Shown in pieces: positions 1 to 50,800 of a DNA stretch of 64,000 bases. The notes beneath the pieces are model-generated. The model ran no database searches, was not told the origin of the DNA, and worked only from the letters and a program-made list of their open reading frames with translations. Made by a program: the position numbers and the translations under genes. The stretch comes from Chrysemys picta bellii (lineage: Eukaryota): the NCBI RefSeq assembly GCF_011386835.1, contig NC_088803.1:11284001-11348000 (forward strand). The letters are read 5' to 3'. The first letter of the stretch is position 1, and the number at the start of each line of letters is the position of its first letter.

Positions 1-44
1 GGGTGGAGCTATTATTGTCAAGTCATGCATGAGGAGTTACCCTA

Positions 45-182
45 TGGCAGTATGGTCTAGTGGGTAGAGTGCCGGAAGGGGACTCAGGAGACCTGGGTTC
101 TATTCACAGGCTTGCTGGATGACCTTGGACAAGTCACTGTCCCACTTTGTGCCTCAGTTTCCCCATCTGTAGAATGGAGATT
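45..182 (+). mobile_element. MIR/CORE-SINE-like element
   Basis: tRNA-like head (TGGTCTAGTGGGTAGAG ... GGGTTCTATT) followed by the CORE-type TGTGCCTCAGTTTCCCCATCTGTAGAATGG. Confidence 0.6.
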
Positions 183-189
183 TGTACAT

Positions 190-520
190 TCCAAGGCCAC
201 AAGGCACCACTGTGGTCATCTAGTCCAAACTCCTTCTCTTGGTTAAGCTAAACAGATTGAGCTCCTTGAGTCACTCACTCTAAGGCAGATTTTCCAATCC
301 TTTAATCATTCTTGTGGCTCTTCTCTGACCCTTTCCCCATGCGTCAACATCTTTCCTGAATTGTGGGGTGCCAGAACTGGACACAGGATCCCAGCAGTGG
401 TTGCACCAGGGCCAAATCCAGGGATAAAATAACCCCTCTACTCCTACTCGAAATTCCCCTTTTTATACATCCCCAGGATAATGATCCCAACCCCTTTTGT
501 CAAGTGTTTTGAGATCTCCA
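190..520 (-). mobile_element. CR1 LINE 3' fragment (degenerate)
   Basis: Reverse strand resembles the CR1 ORF2 3' end and tail (GGACTAGATGACC-like; CCAGAACTGGACACAG on + strand). Boundaries approximate. Confidence 0.55.
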
Positions 521-1178
521 GATGAGAAGAGCTAGATATTATAATTAACCTCACATGGGCTGAGATTTGCAAAGCTGTCAAGGGATTTTAGGCCCCCCAT
601 TTAATTTTAATGGGGATTGGCTGTGCACATCTCTTAGGCACCTTTGAAAATCTCATCTTATCTCTTTGAAAAGCAAAATTCATGCAATTCCTGCAAATCA
701 GGAAACAACAGGATCAAGCAAACTGTGCCATTTATAAAAAAAACTTAATCATCTAGCCCCAGCAGCTGCAAAGATATCCTTAAGTCCCCCACTTTATTAA
801 CACTTCCTGGTCCTCCCTAGGACTGGGAGGACAAAGAACTCTGTGGCTGAGATTTGGACCCTTCTGGTTTGGTGTAATGGGAATGAGTTGTCCAGCTCCC
901 CTAGGTGGCTTAAAAACGCCTGCCCATGAGCTTGACTTACGCCCACAGAGACAGCCTGGAATGATAGCCTTGCCTCCATTCATCTCAGCCAGGCCGTTAA
1001 CTCTGAACCCTACTGGTGACAAATTAAATATCAGCACTTAATTCCACTTTAGTGGCCACCAAGGCAGTGTAAACATTCCCACCTACCCCCACGGGCAGTA
1101 AGCCACAGCTTACCCCTCTTTGGGAATTCCCCAGGAGGCAACAACTTTGAAATTGAGGGTCAAGAAGCAGGCACTTAC

Positions 1179-1697
1179 CCTAGGTCACAGTGCGCAGCCG
1201 TCAGCACAAAGTCCTTTTGGATCAGGAATCCTCCACACCTTTTGTGCCCATGCTTCATGCTGATGTTGAGGAAAGCCATGTAGGGTTTGGAGTGAGACCG
1301 GGCTTCCTTTCCCCCAGTGATCCACCCTGGCGGAGATATCCTCACATCAGGATAGGTTTAAGGTCAGCCTCTGGGCAGGTTAGCTTGACTCACGAACAAC
1401 GCACACCTCTGTGTCCATGTGGACACAGGCCCTGCATCTCCCCCTGTGGCTAAGCAACTTTAGCAATGGCACCAACTTGGGCCCAGCCTTCTCCAATCCA
1501 TGGCATCCCACCTGAGTCCTAGGGTGAGCACAACGCCCAAGGCGGAAGTGTCTGACTCTGGGGAGGAGCCAGGATGTGCTAACAGCCACAACAGCACTGA
1601 ACGGGTCCCGATTCCCCCCGTACTCACCAGCCAGAGCCCCACGAGGCAGGAAAAAAGCCATGGGGAGCAGGAGAAGAAACTGCATTATCAGAGCCAT
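1179..1697 (-). CDS. Granzyme / mast-cell-protease / cathepsin G-like serine protease (S1A), exons 1-2 only; remainder not in window
   Basis: Exon 1 1697(or 1685)-1628 encodes signal peptide [23 protein letters not shown]+G with a phase-1 GTGAGT donor. Intron 1627-1327. Exon 2 1326-1179 (148 nt, CCAG acceptor, GTAAGT donor) encodes [50 protein letters not shown], containing the IIGG-like N-terminus, the PHSRPYMA-like motif and catalytic His in LTAAHC. No stops. Confidence 0.87.
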
Positions 1698-1737
1698 CTG
1701 GGGAAGGGGATGGTGCATCTGCCTCAGCCCTAGGTGA

Positions 1738-1743
1738 TTTATA
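1738..1743 (-). promoter_or_regulatory. TATA box of the protease gene
   Basis: TATAAA on the - strand about 40 nt upstream of ATG 1697. Confidence 0.6.
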
Positions 1744-2289
1744 GACCCAGCAGGAAACCTGCAGGTCACGTATACGCACTCATCTGAGTGGCAGGTTCAG
1801 ACTCTGTTCAACCACAGCTGACCTCACAGGCTGCGGGGAAAGACAGGCCGTGCATCAGCCCAGCAACTGGGTGCCTGCACAGCTGGATGGATGATGGACA
1901 GAGAAGACCCCGGTGGGGGGATGTGTCCTGCAGGATCCAGGGTTGCTCCGGGTGCTGGCTCACAGCTGGGCACATCTGGGGCTCTTACTCATCTGGGCCC
2001 ATCATCGCTCAGCTCCCTGCCCGTGTCTCTGTGCTGGGGGCCGTGTGTGACAGCAACTGCTCTGGGTGGTGGGTGGGAACATGGTCTTTTGATCTTTCTC
2101 AGGGTGGCCCAGCTGTGAGCAGGGTGGGAAGACAAACCATGGGCCTCGATCACAGCAACTGCGGCAGGAGGGTTTCTGAGAAGCCCACCGGTGAATCTGT
2201 GACCACACGAAGGGGATGTGGCAGCCTCTGTGACACCCTATAGCTGGGAGCTATGACTATGCAGCAACAGAGGAGAAATGACACAGCAG

Positions 2290-2460
2290 AGCCAGGCACA
2301 GAACCCAGGAGTCCTGGCTCCCAGATCTCCCCCTTCCCCCCCCCCCCCCCGCTCTAACCACTAGATGCTACTCCCATCCCAGAGCCAGGAGAGAACCCAG
2401 GAGTCCTGACTCCCAGGCGTCCCTGCTCCAACCACTAGACCCCACCCCCCTCCCAGTGCT
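2290..2460 (-). mobile_element. tRNA-derived SINE-like repeat (two units) of a family abundant in this window
   Basis: Reverse strand reads ...GGTCTAGTGGTTAGAGC...GGGAGCCAGGACTCCTGGGTTCT (A-box/B-box-like). The same unit recurs near 9.3, 9.9, 15.4, 19.0, 19.5, 20.9, 21.8, 61.1 and 62.2 kb. Confidence 0.55.
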
Positions 2461-2779
2461 CCCTGCTGTTGGGACGGGATGCCTGGTGTTATGTGGAGCT
2501 GGACCAGGGGGCACAGATGCACCCATCCCCCGATCCCTTCCCTTTGCCTCCCCTTGTGCAGGGGATCATGGTGGTGTCTCTGCTCTGAAAGGTTCATATT
2601 GTCATGGGTGGGGTTGGGTGGGAGAATTATAGACACTACATGGACAGCCTCATGCCCCCGTCCCCCATACACACAGCCCGAGAACCTGCCCAGGCCGCCA
2701 GATGTCTTCTAACAACCCTGTGTTAGTGGCCCTCACACCCCATTAATGCCCTCACCATCCCGCCCTCCTCTGTGACTCT

Positions 2780-3020
2780 TCCCGCACGCCCCTTTAACTC
2801 CTGCCAGCCTCCCCGTCAACCCCCTCACATTCCCACCCAATGCCCTGAAAATCCTCCATACTCCCCTTTAATCCCCCAACCTCCCCTTTAATTCTCTGAG
2901 CATTCCCCTTTAATTCCCACACTACTCCCCTTTAACACCAACCTCCCCTTTAATTCCCCCAGTACTCCCCTTTATTCCCCCCCAGAATTCCTCTTTAGCT
3001 CCCCCAACCTCCCCTTTAAG
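2780..3020. repeat. Degenerate ~22-nt C/T-rich tandem repeat (CTCCCCTTTAA core)
   Basis: About 9-10 recurrences of CCCCTTTA(A) spaced 20-25 nt apart. Confidence 0.75.
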
Positions 3021-3059
3021 GCCCGCGGGCTGGGGCCGGAGCGGTTCTAAGTTCCCCAG

Positions 3060-3201
3060 CCTCACTCTGGCCAGGCAGCCCCACCCCTGGGGGAGGAGGA
3101 GCGGCCTCTGCCCCGGCGACAGGAAGTGACGTACAGTACAGAGGCGGAAGTCGCTTTCTGTGATCGGAAATTAGCTGTTTCCAAGGGGGGCGTCGGGTTG
3201 G
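3060..3201 (+). promoter_or_regulatory. EMC4: EMC4 CpG promoter and probable non-coding first exon
   Basis: CAGGAAGTGACGT (overlapping ETS/CRE-like) at ~3120, GCGGAAGT at ~3144, donor TGG|GTGAGA at 3202, and CTGCAG acceptor at 3636 just before ATG 3643. Confidence 0.55.
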
Positions 3202-3214
3202 GTGAGAGTGTCCA

Positions 3215-3600
3215 GGGGTCAGGACGCCTGGGTCCCCTGCTCGGGGGGAGGGGTCAGGACGCCTGGGTTCCCTGCTCGGGGGGAGGGGTCAGGACGCCTG
3301 GGTCCCCTGCTCGGGAGGAGGGGGCTAGGCTACCTTGGTTTTCGGGGGGGTCAGGACGCCTGGGTTCCCGGGGGTCTGGGCTCCGGGGGGGGGGGGGGGG
3401 CGGGGGCGGGCAGAACGCCTGAGTTCCCGGGGGGAGGATGTCTGGGCTCCGGGGGAGGGAGGGGGCGGGCAGGGCGCCTGGGTTCCCGGGGGTCTGGGCT
3501 CCGGGGGAGGGAGGGGGCGAGCAGGACGCCTGGGTTCCCGGGGGGAGGATGTCTGGGCTCCGGGGGAGGGAGGGAGGGGGCGGGCAGGATGCCTGGGTTC
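3215..3600. repeat. G-rich tandem repeat in the EMC4 5' intron
   Basis: Repeated CAGGACGCCTGGGTTCCC(G)n / TCTGGGCTCCGGGGG units. Confidence 0.7.
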
Positions 3601-3642
3601 CCTGCGACTCGGTCTCTGTCTCTCCCCTGGCTGCAGGCGGAG

Positions 3643-5198
<1,556 letters not shown>

Positions 5199-5342
5199 CC
5201 AACGCCCCTTGCCCCTGGAGTGATTGCAGGTTTTCCAGGAGGACCTGGAGTCTCTACAGCTCCTGTTGGGCTTTGAGCCCCACCACCCTCTTCTAGCCTT
5301 CCCCCTCCTCGGGCGGGGCGGGAGGAAGGGAAGAGGTGGATA

Positions 5343-5348
5343 AATAAA
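5343..5348 (+). terminator. EMC4 polyadenylation signal (proximal); second AATAAA at 5565-5570
   Basis: AATAAA 145 nt after the stop, followed by GT-rich sequence. Confidence 0.7.
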
Positions 5349-5479
5349 GCTGCTGTGCAGAGGTGCCTCCACTGCCTGCTGTGGGGGGTGGGAGGCAGAG
5401 TACACGCAAAAAGCACAATCTGAATCTTCCCTTCCATGTGCAAGTTCCAGCCCCCACAGCTACACTTAATGTATAAAAT

Positions 5480-5485
5480 TTTATT
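5480..5485 (-). terminator. SLC12A6 polyadenylation signal
   Basis: TTTATT on + (AATAAA on -), about 880 nt after the stop at 6365. Confidence 0.7.
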
Positions 5486-6364
5486 CTTTACACATTTCTG
5501 GTACAGAGCAAAAAAAAAATCCCTTCTTCCCCCCCCCAATACTGTAAACTGGGGCTTGACCCCCAATAAATTAAAAGCCCCCCTCTCCCCAAAGATCAAG
5601 TAGTAGGTGCCAGGCCCTGCCTTCCAATTGAAGCTATAGGGGGAGAGGAGATTGGATTTGCCTGTTTCAAGACTGCCCTGGGGGTCAGTGGCTCCAGAAA
5701 CCGCTTGTCCAGCCTGCCATGATTAGTGCTGAGACAACAGCAGCCAGGGGGAGGGAAGGGGGAAACTTATGTCCCTACCCTCTCATGATCCAGCAACCCC
5801 ACCCCCCAAGCAGCCCTATGGCTATGGGGCAGGAGTGAATGTGAAATAAAAAGTTAAGCCACAAGTGTGATGAGTTGGTGGTTTCTTCTGGTTCTCAACC
5901 CCACTCTGGCCCCTGCAAGGGGCATCCCAGCCATTAGGCCTAGGAAGTTGGATCAGTGACTGGCACTGGCCTGCCCTGCCCCGAACAGGCCCCATTACAG
6001 CAACCATGCTGATTGCACCCAAAAGGGGGGGAGAAGGGAGGAGGCCCACAACCCCCCTGCACCCTTCCACAGCAGCTGAAAAGGGAAAGGAAGCAAAGCA
6101 GCTTTGGCACTGCGTGGTGACGGGCATCATGGGAAATCTCTCCCATCCCTGCTTTGTGAGGGTTGCCCCATGGTGACCCGGCCCTGTTGGGTCTAATACC
6201 ACAGTCCCTTTGGTGCCACCCCCTTTCTTGCCCTGTAGGAGTAGAGAGGTGGGGTAACTGCTGCATGGAGGTGTGCCCTTGGTGAATTTTGGCATGCCTC
6301 TTCCCCCCAGCCTGTCTAGAGGGCAGCAGTGGAATGAAGTGGCAGAGGCCAGTGGAGGGGCACT

Positions 6365-26650
<20,286 letters not shown>

Positions 26651-32348: not shown

Positions 32349-33082
32349 TCACAGGATGGCCTGCGGCTGCTGGGTCATCAGGACGCCGAAGCGTTTCTTG
32401 ATGGTGATGCGGTGGCGGGAGTACTTGTCATCCGGGGAGAAGCGGGCAGGGTGTGCGGAGCAGGTCAGCTGGCCAGAGGGATCCACTTTCTGCCAAGGAC
32501 AAGACACAGGAAGACATGTTAGAGCACCCTGGGCCTGACCGATAGCCCCCTGCTATCCCAGCCCTGTGCTCCCCTGACCCACGTCTGCCCACCCCTTCTG
32601 ACCTGCAGCCTCCTGCTAGTCCAGCCTTGCCGGAGCCCCTCACTCCTCACCTGCAACCCTCTGCTAACCCAGCCAGTGCCCCTCACTCCCAACTCACAGC
32701 CCCTGCTAGCCCAGCCTTGCACCCCTCAACTCTGCCAGAACCCCTCACTCTTGACCAGCAGCCCCCTGCTAGCCCAGCCCTGCGGGTGCCCCTCCCTCCC
32801 AACTCACAACCCCTGCTAGCTCAGCCCGGACCCCGCGCCCCTTTCCCAGCACTGCCGGTGCCCCTCACTCCTGACCCGCAGCCCCTCCTAGCCCAGCCCT
32901 GGAGCCAGGCAGCGGGTAGGATGGGGCAGGGCCGGGAGTAGGGACAGTAGGAAAGGTTCGGAAGGATCCGGATTGGGACAGAAGTCGCCAACCCTGCATC
33001 CGGATTGCACCCCGGGGGAAGTGCTCACCTTGAGGGTGTAGACCCTGTCACCCTGCGCGTTGAGATAATACTGCAGGAACAT
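32349..33082 (-). CDS. NOP10: H/ACA ribonucleoprotein complex subunit 3 (64 aa)
   Basis: Exons 33082-33029 ([18 protein letters not shown]) and 32489-32349 ([46 protein letters not shown]), GT-AG. Confidence 0.98.
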
Positions 33083-40900: not shown

Positions 40901-43775
40901 CTGGGTGGGGTTCCTGAGTGGACATCCCCACAGTCCCTGCATGGCGCTCTCCCTTTCCCTGGCAGTATACATCCCCAAAAAGGCGGCATCCAAGGGGCGC
41001 CAGCCCAGGCGCCGTCAGCGCCACCTGCCTGGCCCGGTGGCCCCAGGGGAGCCACGGGAGATCCCGCCTGAGGCCGTGCGGCAGTACACTGAGATCATGG
41101 AGGGGCTGCGGCCCAGCTCGGAGGAGGAGGCTGGCGGGTGCGGCGAGCCCCAGAGCCAGGCACAGGGGACACTCCCAGACCCCGCACTACTGCAGTACGT
41201 TGAGCAGCTCTGTGAGGATGAGAGCTTCGTCTGCAAGGTGAGTGTCTCCCGCGGGGGGGTGCCACATCCCACCCATGGGGCCCTCAGCTCCCAGCATCCA
41301 GGGGGCAAAGACTGGGACGGGGATGGGACCCAAGTGTCCAGGATGGCAGGGCAGGGCCGCATAGCTCCCAGCCCCTGTGGGTAGAGAGCAGGATAGGGAT
41401 GGGACCCAGGTGTCCAGGATGGTAGTGCCAGGTGCTCACCCTCAAGGTGCCCCATATTCCCCAGCCCACATGGGGAAAGACCAGGAGAGGAGATGGAACC
41501 CAGGTGTCCAGGTCGGCAGTGTAAGGTGCTCATCCCAAGGAGGACCCATAGCTCCCAACCCGCGGGGGAGGGGGAGACCAGGACAGGAGATGGGACCCAG
41601 GCATCCAGGTTGGCAGCACCGCACCAGGGCCTCGCTCTCACCCCGCTTCCCCCGCCCCTTGGCCCGGCAGGTGGAAGCCGTGATCCACCCCCAGTTCCTG
41701 GCCCAGCTGCTCTCTCCAGAGAAGAGATGCGACCCCCTGGATCTCAGCGAGGAGCTGGAGCAAGAGCTGGGACTCACCCCAAGCCAGGTACCACCCCACA
41801 CGGCCACTGAGGGGGAGCTAGACCCAAGGAGAGTAGTTGTCTCTCTGCCCCCTTTACACAGAAACCACCCCCCACAGTGACCGCCTTTCCTCTCTCCCCA
41901 CAGCTGGTTGAGAAACGTCTCCTAGCCCTCTCGGAGGACGAGCTCAGCCCCCTGGCGTGCCCAGCCCCCCATTCGGACTCCACCCCCTCCCAGTCCGAAG
42001 AGGAGGATGAAGGCAGCAGCCAAAAGGGACCGGCCAGCCGTCAGCAGGCCATGAGCGGAGCCTCACCCCCCAGGGGCAGCGGGGCCAAGGGCAGGGCTCT
42101 GGGGGCAGAGCAACCAGAGGTGCCAACCCCCACACCTGTGCGGCCATCGCAGCCACGCCAATGGCAGCCAGGAGATGCAGCAGCTCCAAGATGTCTGTCC
42201 CCTCGCAAATGTGGCAGTGAAGGGAGACTATTAGCCTCACTGAGGAGTCGAGTTGAGAGGGTGTCCCAGCAGCCTCAGGGGCAGGGCCAGGATGGAGGCC
42301 GAAGGGAAGGATCAGCAGTTACCCTGGGCACAATACAACCTGGCAGCCAGGCCTGGAGTGTCAGATCACAAGGGGACAATTTGGTAGGACCGGCAAACCA
42401 TGCGTCAACTCCCAGCGGGTACAGAAAACAAGATGGTGGCCAAGAAGGGAAGGTCAAAAGTCAATCTGAAGCCAATGCTGATGGGGAAGGACTAAGAGAT
42501 GCCCCAATGGGAACAAAGTGTTGTTGCCAAGGAGACAACCTGGTGGAAGCTGGAGCTCTAGAGTCAGGTCTCAATGGACATGGACAACAAGATGGCTGCC
42601 AAGGAGAGACGGTCAAAGGCCAACCCCAGGCTGGATGGGAACCACTGGGAGACATCCCAAGTGCCACAGGCCAAGCCAATATCGTGAGGTCACACAGGGA
42701 CAACCTGGTGGAACAAAGAGCTCTAGAGTCAACTTTCAATGGACATGGAAAACAAGAAGGTGGCCTAGAAGGGAAGGTTAGAGGTCAAAACAAGGAGGAG
42801 GCTGATTGGAGTGAAGCCACCCTGAGAGAGCATGATCTCCAGCCTGGGAGCATGAAGTTGAGTGGGAACAACCTGAAAAGAGAAGGAAGCCCAGCGTCAA
42901 CTCCCACTAGGCCTGGAGAACAAGATGGCAGTCAAGCAGATCAACCAACCAAACTGGAGTCTAGGGTGGGTGGTGGCCACCCTACAGTGTTACTACTCAG
43001 CAGGGCCAATGGGCAGCCCTTAAGCCTCTTTGCTCGCCCTCTGGGTGCTGACGGGCGAGGGGAGGGTGAATTGCCACCAGTGTCCAACGTTCAAGGCCAA
43101 CGTCCTGACCCACCTCCCCTTGGCCTGAGTGGCCTGAAGGGACCTACTCAGGCCCGGGCAGCTTTAGAGGCTGACTCCAGTTGCCGAGCAGAGCCAGAAT
43201 GGAGATTTGCAATAGAGATGGGGTCAAGACAGCCCCACTTCCTAGATGGTGGCAACAGTGAAGGCAATGGAGTCAGAACCATGGCCGGACCTGGAGATCC
43301 AGAACAATGTGAGGCAGGAGCTACCAGGGGCTGTGGCAATGGGACCAGTTCAAGGGATGATGGAAAGGAGGCGGGAGAGGCCAGTTCAGCCATGGGTGAT
43401 GGCCCTTCCAAGATGGCCACAATTGCCAGCTCAGAATTTCCCCCGGAGGGCATGGAGGATGCTGGGAAACATGATGATGATGAGGAAGATGATGAAGAAC
43501 TGTCCATTTTTTCCTCTCTGCTGGCATCAAAACTCCATCTCTCCAGTCCCGAGGGACCTGTTGGCTCTGTCCCTGCCCTGAGGGACCAAGTGGGGCCCCA
43601 CAGCAGAGCCCTCTCCCCGACTTGGGAGACAGTGAGATGGGATCCCATGAGGAGACGCTCCACACGGCTGTGCCCAGATGGGTCACATGCCATGGACACT
43701 GGCGTTCGGCTCAGCCATAAGAGGAGGAGCAACAATATGGCCGCCAGGAGGAGCAAGCGCCTGCGCAGCCAATGA
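37943..43775 (+). CDS. NUTM1: NUT family member 1 (NUT midline carcinoma protein homolog); 5' start uncertain, >=991 aa from ATG 38102
   Basis: Exons 37943(or 38042/38102)-38550, 38782-38910, 39023-39159, 40966-41237, 41671-41787, 41904-43775, all GT-AG and in frame from 38102. Motifs [35 protein letters not shown]...[88 protein letters not shown] and terminal RRSKRLRSQ match recalled NUT. See the finding on the frame break at 37987-38130. Confidence 0.9.
39278..40715. repeat. Intronic satellite, ~20-nt alternating subunits (CATACCTAGAA / CATACCCAGCA + TTTTGCA), split by a MITE
   Basis: Tracts at 39278-39708 and 40432-40715. Confidence 0.85.
39709..40423. mobile_element. hAT MITE (same family as 33684-35721)
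   Basis: TIR TAGGGGTGGGCAAAC / GTTTCCCCACCTCTG; perfect TSD ACCTAGAA at 39701-39708 and 40424-40431. Confidence 0.9.
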
Positions 43776-47800: not shown

Positions 47801-50800
47801 TGCAGAGTTGCGATGCCGTCAACCAGATGACTTTGAGCCTGCGTGGGGCGAGAGAGACATGACACCCCAAGTTAGTCATTCAAGAATACAGCAGGGAGAC
47901 AAACAGACACACAACAAAGCTTGTCCCCTCCAGCAGGGGGCAGCAGACAGACACCAGCACTCATCCTCTCCAGCAGGGGGCAGCAGACAGAGACAGATAC
48001 ACAGCAGGGCTCATTCCCTCCAGCAGGGGGCAGCAGACAGACAGACAGATACACAGCAGGGCTCATTCCCTCCAGCAAGGGGCAGCAGACAGACAGATAG
48101 ATCCCTCCCCCATGCATAACTCACACTCCGGGGCCTTGCCACGCCCAGGTTGTCGAGTCCTGCCAAGAGAAGAACAGAGGCATTGGTTGTGCGGCCCGAC
48201 CACGCCATCCACCCGGCCCATTATCCCTGCCAGACACTCACCAGGCTGTTGGGGTACCGGACGAGGATGGGCTGGATAGGAACCCCGGCAATGAAGGCAC
48301 CTGGGAGAGAGAGTCACAACCGGTTTACACCAAGGCTTTCACTCTGGATTTACACGGGGGTGCAGAGAGGGGTGTAGGCTGTAACAGTGTCACCTGCATA
48401 CATGCAAGGAGTTATGCCAGGCACACAGAGAGGTTAACAGCCTTTCCGCTGAGGATCACCCTGTGGGTTACTGTCGTTTGCTCTGGGTTTACACTTTGGT
48501 AAGTCTAAGTTTACACAGTGTTTACTCGGATGGTTACTCCAGAGTTACACTGACTCTAGCTTTACAGTGGATTTTTGCAGTGTTTACTTGGAGGGTTACT
48601 CTAGATTGACAATGAGGTTACTCTCTGCTTCTTCTAGGTTCACATATTGGGGGTTAGCCAGCGTTTACACTAAGGGTACATTTACATTGAGGTTCACATT
48701 TCAGTTTACATAGATTGGTTCTCTAGGATTGCCCTGAGACTGGCCACATTTACACTGATGATTGCTCTGGGTTTACTCTGTGCTTCAAACAGAGCTGCTG
48801 CTCTTGATCCACACAGCATGTTACTCAACATTCACTCCAGGTTTACTCTGTGCTTCACACAGAGCAGCTGCTCTCAATACACACAATGTGTTACTCCAGG
48901 TTTATTCTGTGCTTCAAATTGTGTCGCTACTCTCAATCCACGCTGCAGATTACTCCAGGTTTACCCTTACCATATACAGGGGATTACATCATGTTCCACA
49001 ACAACGTTTCCTCCTGCTTCACACCCAGCGCACCTGCGCTGCTCACACTGGAGTTTCCTGCAGCTCCGCCTGAGCATCTCACCCCCCCAGTCCCAACCCT
49101 GCAGGGAGGAGTCTCTGGGCTCGAGAGTCATTACACCCAGGCCCTGCTTGACCAGCGGGAAAGGGGTCCCAGGGTGGGGGTCGCCCTACTCCCCCCACCC
49201 CTGTGTGAGCCAGGCTGTGCTTCCGGGCCTCATACCTGGCTTAAACTTCAGTAAGGCTTTCTTGTTAGAGCAGGTCCCCTCGGGAAAGAAGAGCACCTCG
49301 GGGAGAGCAAAGAGGAGAGTGTCAGATACACTGGGAGGGGGAGGCGGGGGGGGTGATCCAGGGGAGGGGTGGGAATTGGGGGAGGGGGGAACCAGTCTCA
49401 CCTGTGGCCATTTTCCCTGGGATGTGGCCCGTCTCTTCACCTCCTCTACCACCTTCTTGCGGGAGGCTGGGTCGTGGCGGGACACCAAGATGGCTTGGTT
49501 GAACCGGAGCAAGGCTGGGGAGTGGAGGGGGCAGAGAAATGGGTGAGGGGGGAAAGTCCCACCACCACCTGCTGCCACTCAACCCCAATGGAGCCACCAC
49601 AGGTCCTCACCCTGGGGCCGCCTCCTCCACCTCCCCTCACTCCCCATCCCCTCTCCCACCTCCTCTCCTCTGCTCCGCTGCTATCCACAAGCCCTTCTTT
49701 TCCCCACCCCCCATCTCCTCCTCCTTCCTCCTCCTGCCCCAAACCCATGGCGCTGTCTCCATCAGTGGAGAGACCCACCAAAATGGGGAGGATGGGACAT
49801 CGCCGGATCCGGCTCTATACCCCACTGTTACCTATCAGCTCTGTGTTCTTGGGGAACCAGGGTGCAGTACCCAGCCTGTCTGACCTCCCCCCCCCCCCCC
49901 CATCCCCCAGCCTCTGCTTGAACCAAAACAAAAAGCAATGAAAAGGCCGTGGGAGACACAGCTAAACCCCTGGGATAAGGGTGACAGGACTAAGGAAACT
50001 CCCCTGGCCCCTGCCTCGGAGATGGGACAAGGAGGCATCTCCATTAGCTACAGAATGGAGAACAGAGATTCCAAGGCAAGAACCGCACGGAACTCTGGGA
50101 CCAGCAAAGCAGGGAAGCACTGCATGATGGGGGATCTCTGCTCCAGATCTTAATGAACCCACGCCTGCACACACCCAGCTCAGTAGTTATCAGACCAATT
50201 CTAGTAATGAATCCTTTATTGGTAGCCAAAATGGTGAAGCTCCCTAATTGCATTGTGAGCTCCGTCCAAGGAACACCGCCCAAAGCCAGGAATGATCAGC
50301 TCCCATTGTCTAACCCAGGGGTAGGCAACCTATGGCATGTGTGCCAAAGGCGGCACGCGAGCTGATTTTCAGTGGCACTCACACTGCCTGGGTCCTGGCC
50401 ACCGCTCCGGGGGGCTCTGCATTTTAATTTAATTTTAAATGAAGCTTCTTAAACAGTTTAAAAACCTTATTTACTTTACATACAACAATAGTTTAGTTAT
50501 ATAGTATAGACTTATAGAAAGAGAACTAAAATATTAAACTGTATTACTGGCATGCAAAACCTTAAATTAGAGTGAATAAATGAAGACTCGGCACAGCACT
50601 TCTGAAAGGTTGCCAACCCCTGGTCTAGCCTGAACAAAACAACTGTGGTATTCTCCCTTGAGCCATCAGTTTACACATAAACAAATCTAGTGTTCTCCCT
50701 TGAACCATTGTTGTTTCTCTACAAAACCCCCTATCCACGCTCAAGTAAGTGTTCTGATGCCTGGATCCAAAATCTGCATCAGTTCCATTGGGACTTCATC

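Follow-up and report, generated by a model that had tools for sequence, protein, structure and literature searches.

Two protease exons beside EMC4 in Chrysemys picta bellii very probably belong to a complete five-exon gene of the chymase locus

Two short exons of a serine protease, preceded by a TATA box, lie on the minus strand near the left edge of a 64,000-nucleotide stretch of Chrysemys picta bellii DNA (the whole of this stretch is referred to here as the window), in the immediate neighbourhood of EMC4. The locus raises two questions, namely whether these exons are the remnant of a gene that has lost its other exons or the visible part of a complete one, and how old the linkage between such a protease and EMC4 may be. 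In human, CMA1, CTSG, GZMH and GZMB are located on 14q and EMC4 at 15q14. The results obtained here indicate that positions 1179-1743 very probably comprise the promoter and the first two exons of a complete minus-strand gene with five exons, the EMC4-proximal member of the chymase locus, and there is hardly any doubt about the identity and completeness of the gene itself.

Reading of the minus strand of 1100-1800 confirmed to the base the TATA box, the signal-peptide exon ending in phase 1 and the 148-nt exon with LTAAHC, all as described in the initial annotation (Table 1). The coding part of exon 1 that spans 1697-1628 encodes a hydrophobic signal peptide of 23 residues and is followed by the donor GTGAGT from 1627. 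Exon 2, whose donor is GTAAGT, reads W-ITGG...SHSKPYMA...CGGFLI...LTAAHC-DL and holds the end of a Gly-Trp pro-dipeptide, the mature N-terminus ITGG, Cys42, His57 (in LTAAHC) and Cys58. In-frame ATGs are present at both 1718 and 1697, and the RefSeq protein XP_008174861.2 includes the extension MHHPLPQ that begins at the former. An alignment of five promoters (Chrysemys, Caretta, Emydura, Pelodiscus and one Chrysemys paralogue) showed that Emydura, Pelodiscus and the Chrysemys paralogue lack ATG 1718, situated just 25 nt from the TATA box, whereas ATG 1697 is kept in four of the five; because of this pattern of conservation and spacing, the true start is more likely to be ATG 1697 than the one chosen in RefSeq. 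The TATA box, an upstream TTCCT motif and the exon 1 donor are invariant across these five orthologue and paralogue promoters. The region further upstream shows 90% identity to Caretta and 72% to Emydura, and its part from ~1864 to 2417 also aligns with regions upstream of neighbouring paralogues, the apparent promoter homology being inflated beyond ~2300, since a SINE-like repeat is located there. This dispersed element, with the core ...GAACCCAGGAGTCCTGGCTCCCAG..., occurs at window positions 2280-2460 and 9283-9384 and recurs in the Emydura and Pelodiscus loci.

Table 1. Features of the protease gene and of EMC4 in the window (positions in window coordinates; minus-strand features are read from the higher to the lower number).
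Feature	Position	Strand	Details	Basis
TATA box	1743-1738	-	TATAAA	direct reading; promoter alignment
Exon 1	1628-1718	-	RefSeq CDS from ATG 1718; leader and first base of Gly codon, phase 1	direct reading; splice solution; promoter alignment
Intron 1	1327-1627	-	301 nt, GT...AG	sequence reading and splice solution
Exon 2	1179-1326	-	148 nt, phase 1 in, phase 2 out	reading, Pfam/PDB search, RefSeq match, splice solution
Intron 2 (part)	1-1178	-	first 1178 of 1415 nt	splice solution
Upstream region aligning with orthologue promoters	1744-2417	-		alignment
EMC4 coding span	3643-5198	+	181 aa, Pfam EMC4	gene call, L003 6521-8076

The protease gene and EMC4 are arranged head-to-head on opposite strands. 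The distance from the protease TATA box to the EMC4 start codon at 3643 is ~1.9 kb, which replaces the earlier estimate of ~1.4 kb counted from a presumed start site. Window positions 183-9000 are 100% identical, with 0 mismatches over 8818 bases, to a locus on chromosome CM062330.1 of assembly GCA_011386835.2 (locus L003; window = 11719 - L003), in which the gene order is SLC12A6 (encoding 1149 aa), EMC4 (181 aa) and then the protease. Further into the window, SLC12 exons were found together with the N-terminal motif of NOP10 at 33082 (-), an ORF with a NUT domain at 41811-43772 (+) and an acyltransferase (LPCAT4-like) exon at 49189-49578 (-), so that the block from EMC4 to LPCAT4 proposed initially was recovered. 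Just upstream of the EMC4 start codon, the GC-rich interval 3200-3600 is composed of degenerate tandem units of 40-60 nt (GGTCAGGACGCCTGGGT...CCGGGGGGAGG).

The two exons would be an orphan fragment or a pseudogene if exons 3-5 had been lost, and the window taken by itself is in line with such a loss, as exon 3 was not found in 1-1178 in any of the three minus-strand frames of 183-1178 and 1-138. The initial annotation had placed exons 3-5 either outside the window or among lost sequences and had allowed for an orphan without downstream exons, but reading of the flanking sequence found all three intact. A single combination of AG/GT splice sites in L003 reproduces exactly, in an open frame, the 259-aa protein XP_008174861.2 (P0283) of Chrysemys picta bellii, named "mast cell protease 1A-like", whose residues 1-80 are identical to the product of exons 1 and 2. 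Exon 3 begins at window position -237 and the stop codon is at -2321, which places exons 3-5 at 237-2321 bp past the left edge; since they are present and intact just outside, the edge of the window merely cuts intron 2, and of the two earlier options the location outside was correct and the loss was not. The exon lengths of 91/148/136/261/144 nt, the intron phases 1-2-0-0 and the short signal-peptide exon correspond to the gene structure of the chymase locus, and orthologues are intact in ten other turtles. The fragment or pseudogene reading is thus refuted at the assembly level by the intact exons, and its probability is very small. An even smaller probability attaches to the proposal, also considered at the outset, that the junction between EMC4 and the protease is an artefact of assembly. 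SLC12A6, EMC4 and the protease have the same order and orientation in Chrysemys and in independent chromosome-level assemblies of three further genera, namely Caretta (two assemblies), Carettochelys and Gopherus (G. flavomarginatus), and the Caretta alignment across window positions 3019-275 is nearly unbroken, consisting of two blocks that abut at ~2408-2459. Because four species have the junction, it is not a misassembly. The EMC4-adjacent position of the protease is conserved in four turtle families, and the junction is real and predates the split between Trionychia and Durocryptodira; as it is common to Durocryptodira and Carettochelys, it is old within Cryptodira.

The next protease gene downstream is 8.7 kb away in Caretta and 1.2 kb away in Carettochelys. 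The nearest genes of Emydura and Pelodiscus are embedded in arrays of proteases and have no EMC4 inside a distance of 10 kb, which does not count against the adjacency in these two lineages. In Chrysemys, the upstream region of the protease occurs a second time ~5.6 kb past the stop codon of the gene (L003:19630-20233), and this copy aligns both to the promoter of this gene and to the promoter of the next protease gene of Caretta. No protease exon was detected in the 3.8 kb that follow this copy in Chrysemys, although an intact gene for a 249-aa protein is present at the corresponding site of Caretta, and the neighbouring gene has probably been lost or displaced in Chrysemys. A different Chrysemys protein, named "granzyme H-like" (P0260) and carrying a DGG (tryptase-type) S1 triplet, is encoded on the same chromosome (L004, CM062330.1, ~10,124,918-10,129,547) at ~1.15 Mb from the EMC4-adjacent protease; no further gene was called in the 10 kb around it, and it could belong either to the distant portion of a very long cluster or to a locus of its own.

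The gene is not restricted to Chrysemys. An exhaustive search with exon 2 retrieved a sea-turtle protein (P0009) with 96% identity, and the 90% cluster to which this protein belongs contains RefSeq models from five sea turtles under the names granzyme B and mast cell protease 1A-like. When the complete Caretta protein was used in a word search, orthologues were listed from Dermochelys, Chrysemys, Chelydra, Mauremys, Gopherus, Emydura, Carettochelys, Pelusios and Pelodiscus. The description of the gene as hidden therefore applies only to the prokaryote-style ORF track, as RefSeq models of the orthologue already exist in this species and in at least 10 other turtles. Four sea-turtle models labelled as X1 isoforms (P0009, P0155, P0156 and P0160; 303-320 aa) extend beyond the donor of exon 4 into the following intron 4, where the exon carrying Ser195 is replaced by an unrelated Pro/Ser-rich tail, and these are predicted to lack the catalytic serine; they may be either retained-intron noise or real products. 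A maximum-likelihood tree of 45 proteins placed the gene in a turtle-wide orthogroup with support of 100/98 without Pelodiscus and 92/96 with Pelodiscus, and the branching inside the orthogroup roughly tracks the phylogeny of turtles. This orthogroup, the mammalian clade of granzyme B and duodenase and two other turtle clades join in a polytomy.

The assignment to the chymase-locus family, as initially proposed, is borne out by both the exon 2 peptide and the whole protein. The 48 residues encoded by exon 2 matched the Pfam family Trypsin (PF00089) with an E-value of 3.7e-13 (50.2 bits, cut-off 20.6), and this domain is also carried by the whole protein. Against the PDB, the best match of the same peptide was cathepsin G (E = 1.2e-15), followed by granzyme H, granzyme B, chymase and duodenase, with granzymes A, K and M, factor D and elastases scoring far lower. 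With the complete XP_008174861.2 as query, the top 20 distinct PDB sequences were all chymase-locus enzymes with scores of 208-252 bits (rat and human granzyme B, duodenase, cathepsin G, granzyme H, chymases, RMCP-II and granzyme C); outside this set, the next best was granzyme A with 161 bits, and trypsins reached ~155 bits. The catalytic triad His57/Asp102/Ser195 corresponds to His76, Asp120 and Ser215 of XP_008174861.2 and is conserved in 11 turtle species. Only His57, in exon 2, falls within the window; Asp102 (exon 3) and Ser195 (exon 5) are encoded outside it. The precursor contains six cysteines (61, 77, 154, 186, 199 and 221), corresponding to three disulfides, and as residue 191 is Phe and only these six are present, the Cys191-Cys220 bond is absent. 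Three disulfides without Cys191-Cys220 are a trait of the chymase-locus family, as is a place in the cluster that RIPK3/SDR39U1 border. The predicted zymogen activation site, with ITGG straight after Gly-Trp, fits the pattern Ile16-x-Gly-Gly, Thr17 being unusual. The sequence GW-ITGG (start of exon 2, window 1315-1326) was observed in Chrysemys, Trachemys, Emys, Gopherus, Caretta and Dermochelys, and the other orthologues have GW-IIGG (Chelydra), GR-IIGG (pleurodires), GQ-IIGG (Carettochelys) or GE-IIGG (Pelodiscus). Every aligned turtle paralogue has GE-IIGG, and the mammalian rows have GE- or GK-IIGG.

Among the enzymes of known structure, granzyme B (rat NKP-1, 1fi8; human, 1fq3/1iau) is the closest to the turtle protein, the rat enzyme ranking first among the PDB matches over the whole length (252 bits). 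Arg226 in S1, Phe191, the lack of a Cys191-Cys220 bond and a propeptide of two residues are common to both, and both are encoded by five exons, those numbered 2, 3 and 4 measuring 148, 136 and 261 nt in the turtle, which we take to be the lengths of the human GZMB exons as well. They differ in the propeptide and N-terminus (Gly-Trp and Ile-Thr in the turtle, Gly-Glu and Ile-Ile in granzyme B) and, according to the alignment, in residue 189, which is Ser in the turtle protein and Ala in rat granzyme B. Cathepsin G, granzyme H, mast cell chymase and duodenase scored 237-250 bits and have the same fold and disulfide pattern as the turtle protein; however, residue 226 is Glu, Gly or Ala in these enzymes (PMC8537139, PMC4646688) and Arg in the turtle.

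If processing resembles that of mammalian granzymes, the signal peptide would be removed first, the Gly-Trp dipeptide would then be clipped (by cathepsin C/DPPI in mammals), the freed Ile16 would form the active site, and the enzyme may be stored in the granules of cytotoxic cells or mast cells. Arg226, lining the S1 pocket, would direct cleavage after Asp, as in granzyme B. The S1 triplet is Ser189-Gly216-Arg226 (SGR) in all 11 turtle orthologues, and no gaps occur over 215-229 when the protein is aligned to rat granzyme B, Arg226 being retained; the neighbouring paralogues have AGR, GGR, SGA or DGG. SGR and AGR triplets have been interpreted as indicating an Asp-ase, i.e., a granzyme B-like enzyme (PMC4646688, PMC8537139). 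Because of Arg226 in S1 and the SGR triplet common to the orthologues, the turtle enzyme most likely cleaves after Asp, a prediction that we favour by analogy, though with restrained confidence. The gene could also be real and complete and nevertheless encode a mast-cell chymase-like or a cathepsin G/duodenase-like enzyme with a specificity different from, or broader than, that of a granzyme B-like Asp-ase, a possibility that has an appreciable probability short of even. It would be consistent with the RefSeq name of the Chrysemys protein, a mast cell protease and not a granzyme, and with the varying source names of the orthologues ("mast cell protease 1A-like", "mast cell protease 3-like", "cathepsin G-like" and "granzyme B"), but automatic names in this protease family are misleading (PMC4646688). 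Likewise, the exon 2 peptide taken alone is nearest to cathepsin G, but at full length the best match is rat granzyme B. The tree gives no resolved sister relation to granzyme B, and the mature Ile-Thr with a preceding Trp is unusual, the other aligned family members having GE-IIGG. In addition, a buffalo protein named duodenase-1-like also has SGR in the alignment, so that S1 triplets are imperfect predictors; against this, Arg226 is retained in 11 of 11 turtle orthologues.

Sequencing runs were also considered. Fourteen small runs (62-226 million letters each, guessed to be RNA, under two species labels and from five studies) contain 26-50% of the words sampled from 1100-1800, and four large runs contain 86-94%. 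As the exons make up ~34%, about a third, of this interval, the pattern in the small runs fits spliced transcripts of the gene, although it is not proof of them.

The turtle chymase locus has been described previously in Gopherus (Akula, Fu, Wernersson, Hellman 2021, PMC8537139), where it comprises 20 protease genes, of which five or more are pseudogenes, and where several genes with Arg226 triplets were read as granzyme B homologues. The gene analysed here belongs to the same family and clade, and its G. flavomarginatus orthologue occupies the same position. In that study, RIPK3 was the one border of the Gopherus locus shared with mammals, and the origin of the chymase locus was placed in early tetrapods, with a loss in birds (PMC8537139). 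EMC4 is absent from the text of this article, and the border may still be drawn in its figures; EMC4, TMEM85 and SLC12A6 were likewise absent from the chymase-locus papers among the results listed. A separate locus of reptiles, birds and frogs, bordered by GNA11 and NCLN, encodes related S1A granule proteases, which differ in forming a separate branch with DGG triplets (PMC4646688).

Comparisons outside turtles offered limited guidance on the age of the linkage. In the lizard Podarcis lilfordi (OX395144.1, L007), a 377-aa "mast cell protease 1A-like" model is located between a trypsin-like gene and a gene with a TLE_N domain, and because the TLE_N gene adjoins it, this protein (P0205) was assigned to the GNA11/NCLN-type locus and not to the classical chymase locus. 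The Podarcis homologue is 43% identical to the Caretta orthologue and lies outside the turtle and mammal clades in the tree. No squamate gene of the classical locus was present among the 120 best matches of the Caretta protein search, and no crocodilian protein was among the matches listed. Chicken chromosome 5 combines material of human 14q and 15q, and if this is right, a linkage on the same chromosome would be old in sauropsids, which is to be taken as a lead. A wider reading would make the EMC4-adjacent Arg226 gene the founder member of the chymase locus of turtles, fixed in its position, and a functional homologue of granzyme B held at the locus edge since before the Trionychia/Durocryptodira split. 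Under this reading, the EMC4 junction, at which a human-15q14-like block adjoins a human-14q12-like locus, could be an arrangement ancestral to sauropsids or amniotes that was later broken in mammals, and not a turtle rearrangement; we consider the reading as a whole rather unlikely and put it forward tentatively.

The gene is neither fragmentary nor new, as RefSeq already contains it and the chymase locus of turtles has been published, and to that extent the result matters little beyond bookkeeping. It illustrates that, where two-exon "fragments" appear at the edge of a window, the flanking sequence needs to be checked before exons are called lost. For the family, the edge of the locus opposite RIPK3 can now be named as EMC4, and its stability in four turtle families provides a fixed anchor for comparisons of a fast-evolving cluster. 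The edge gene, which forms a single-copy orthogroup and has a granzyme B-like pocket, would be a sensible first candidate for recombinant work on specificity, which specialists describe as hard in reptiles.
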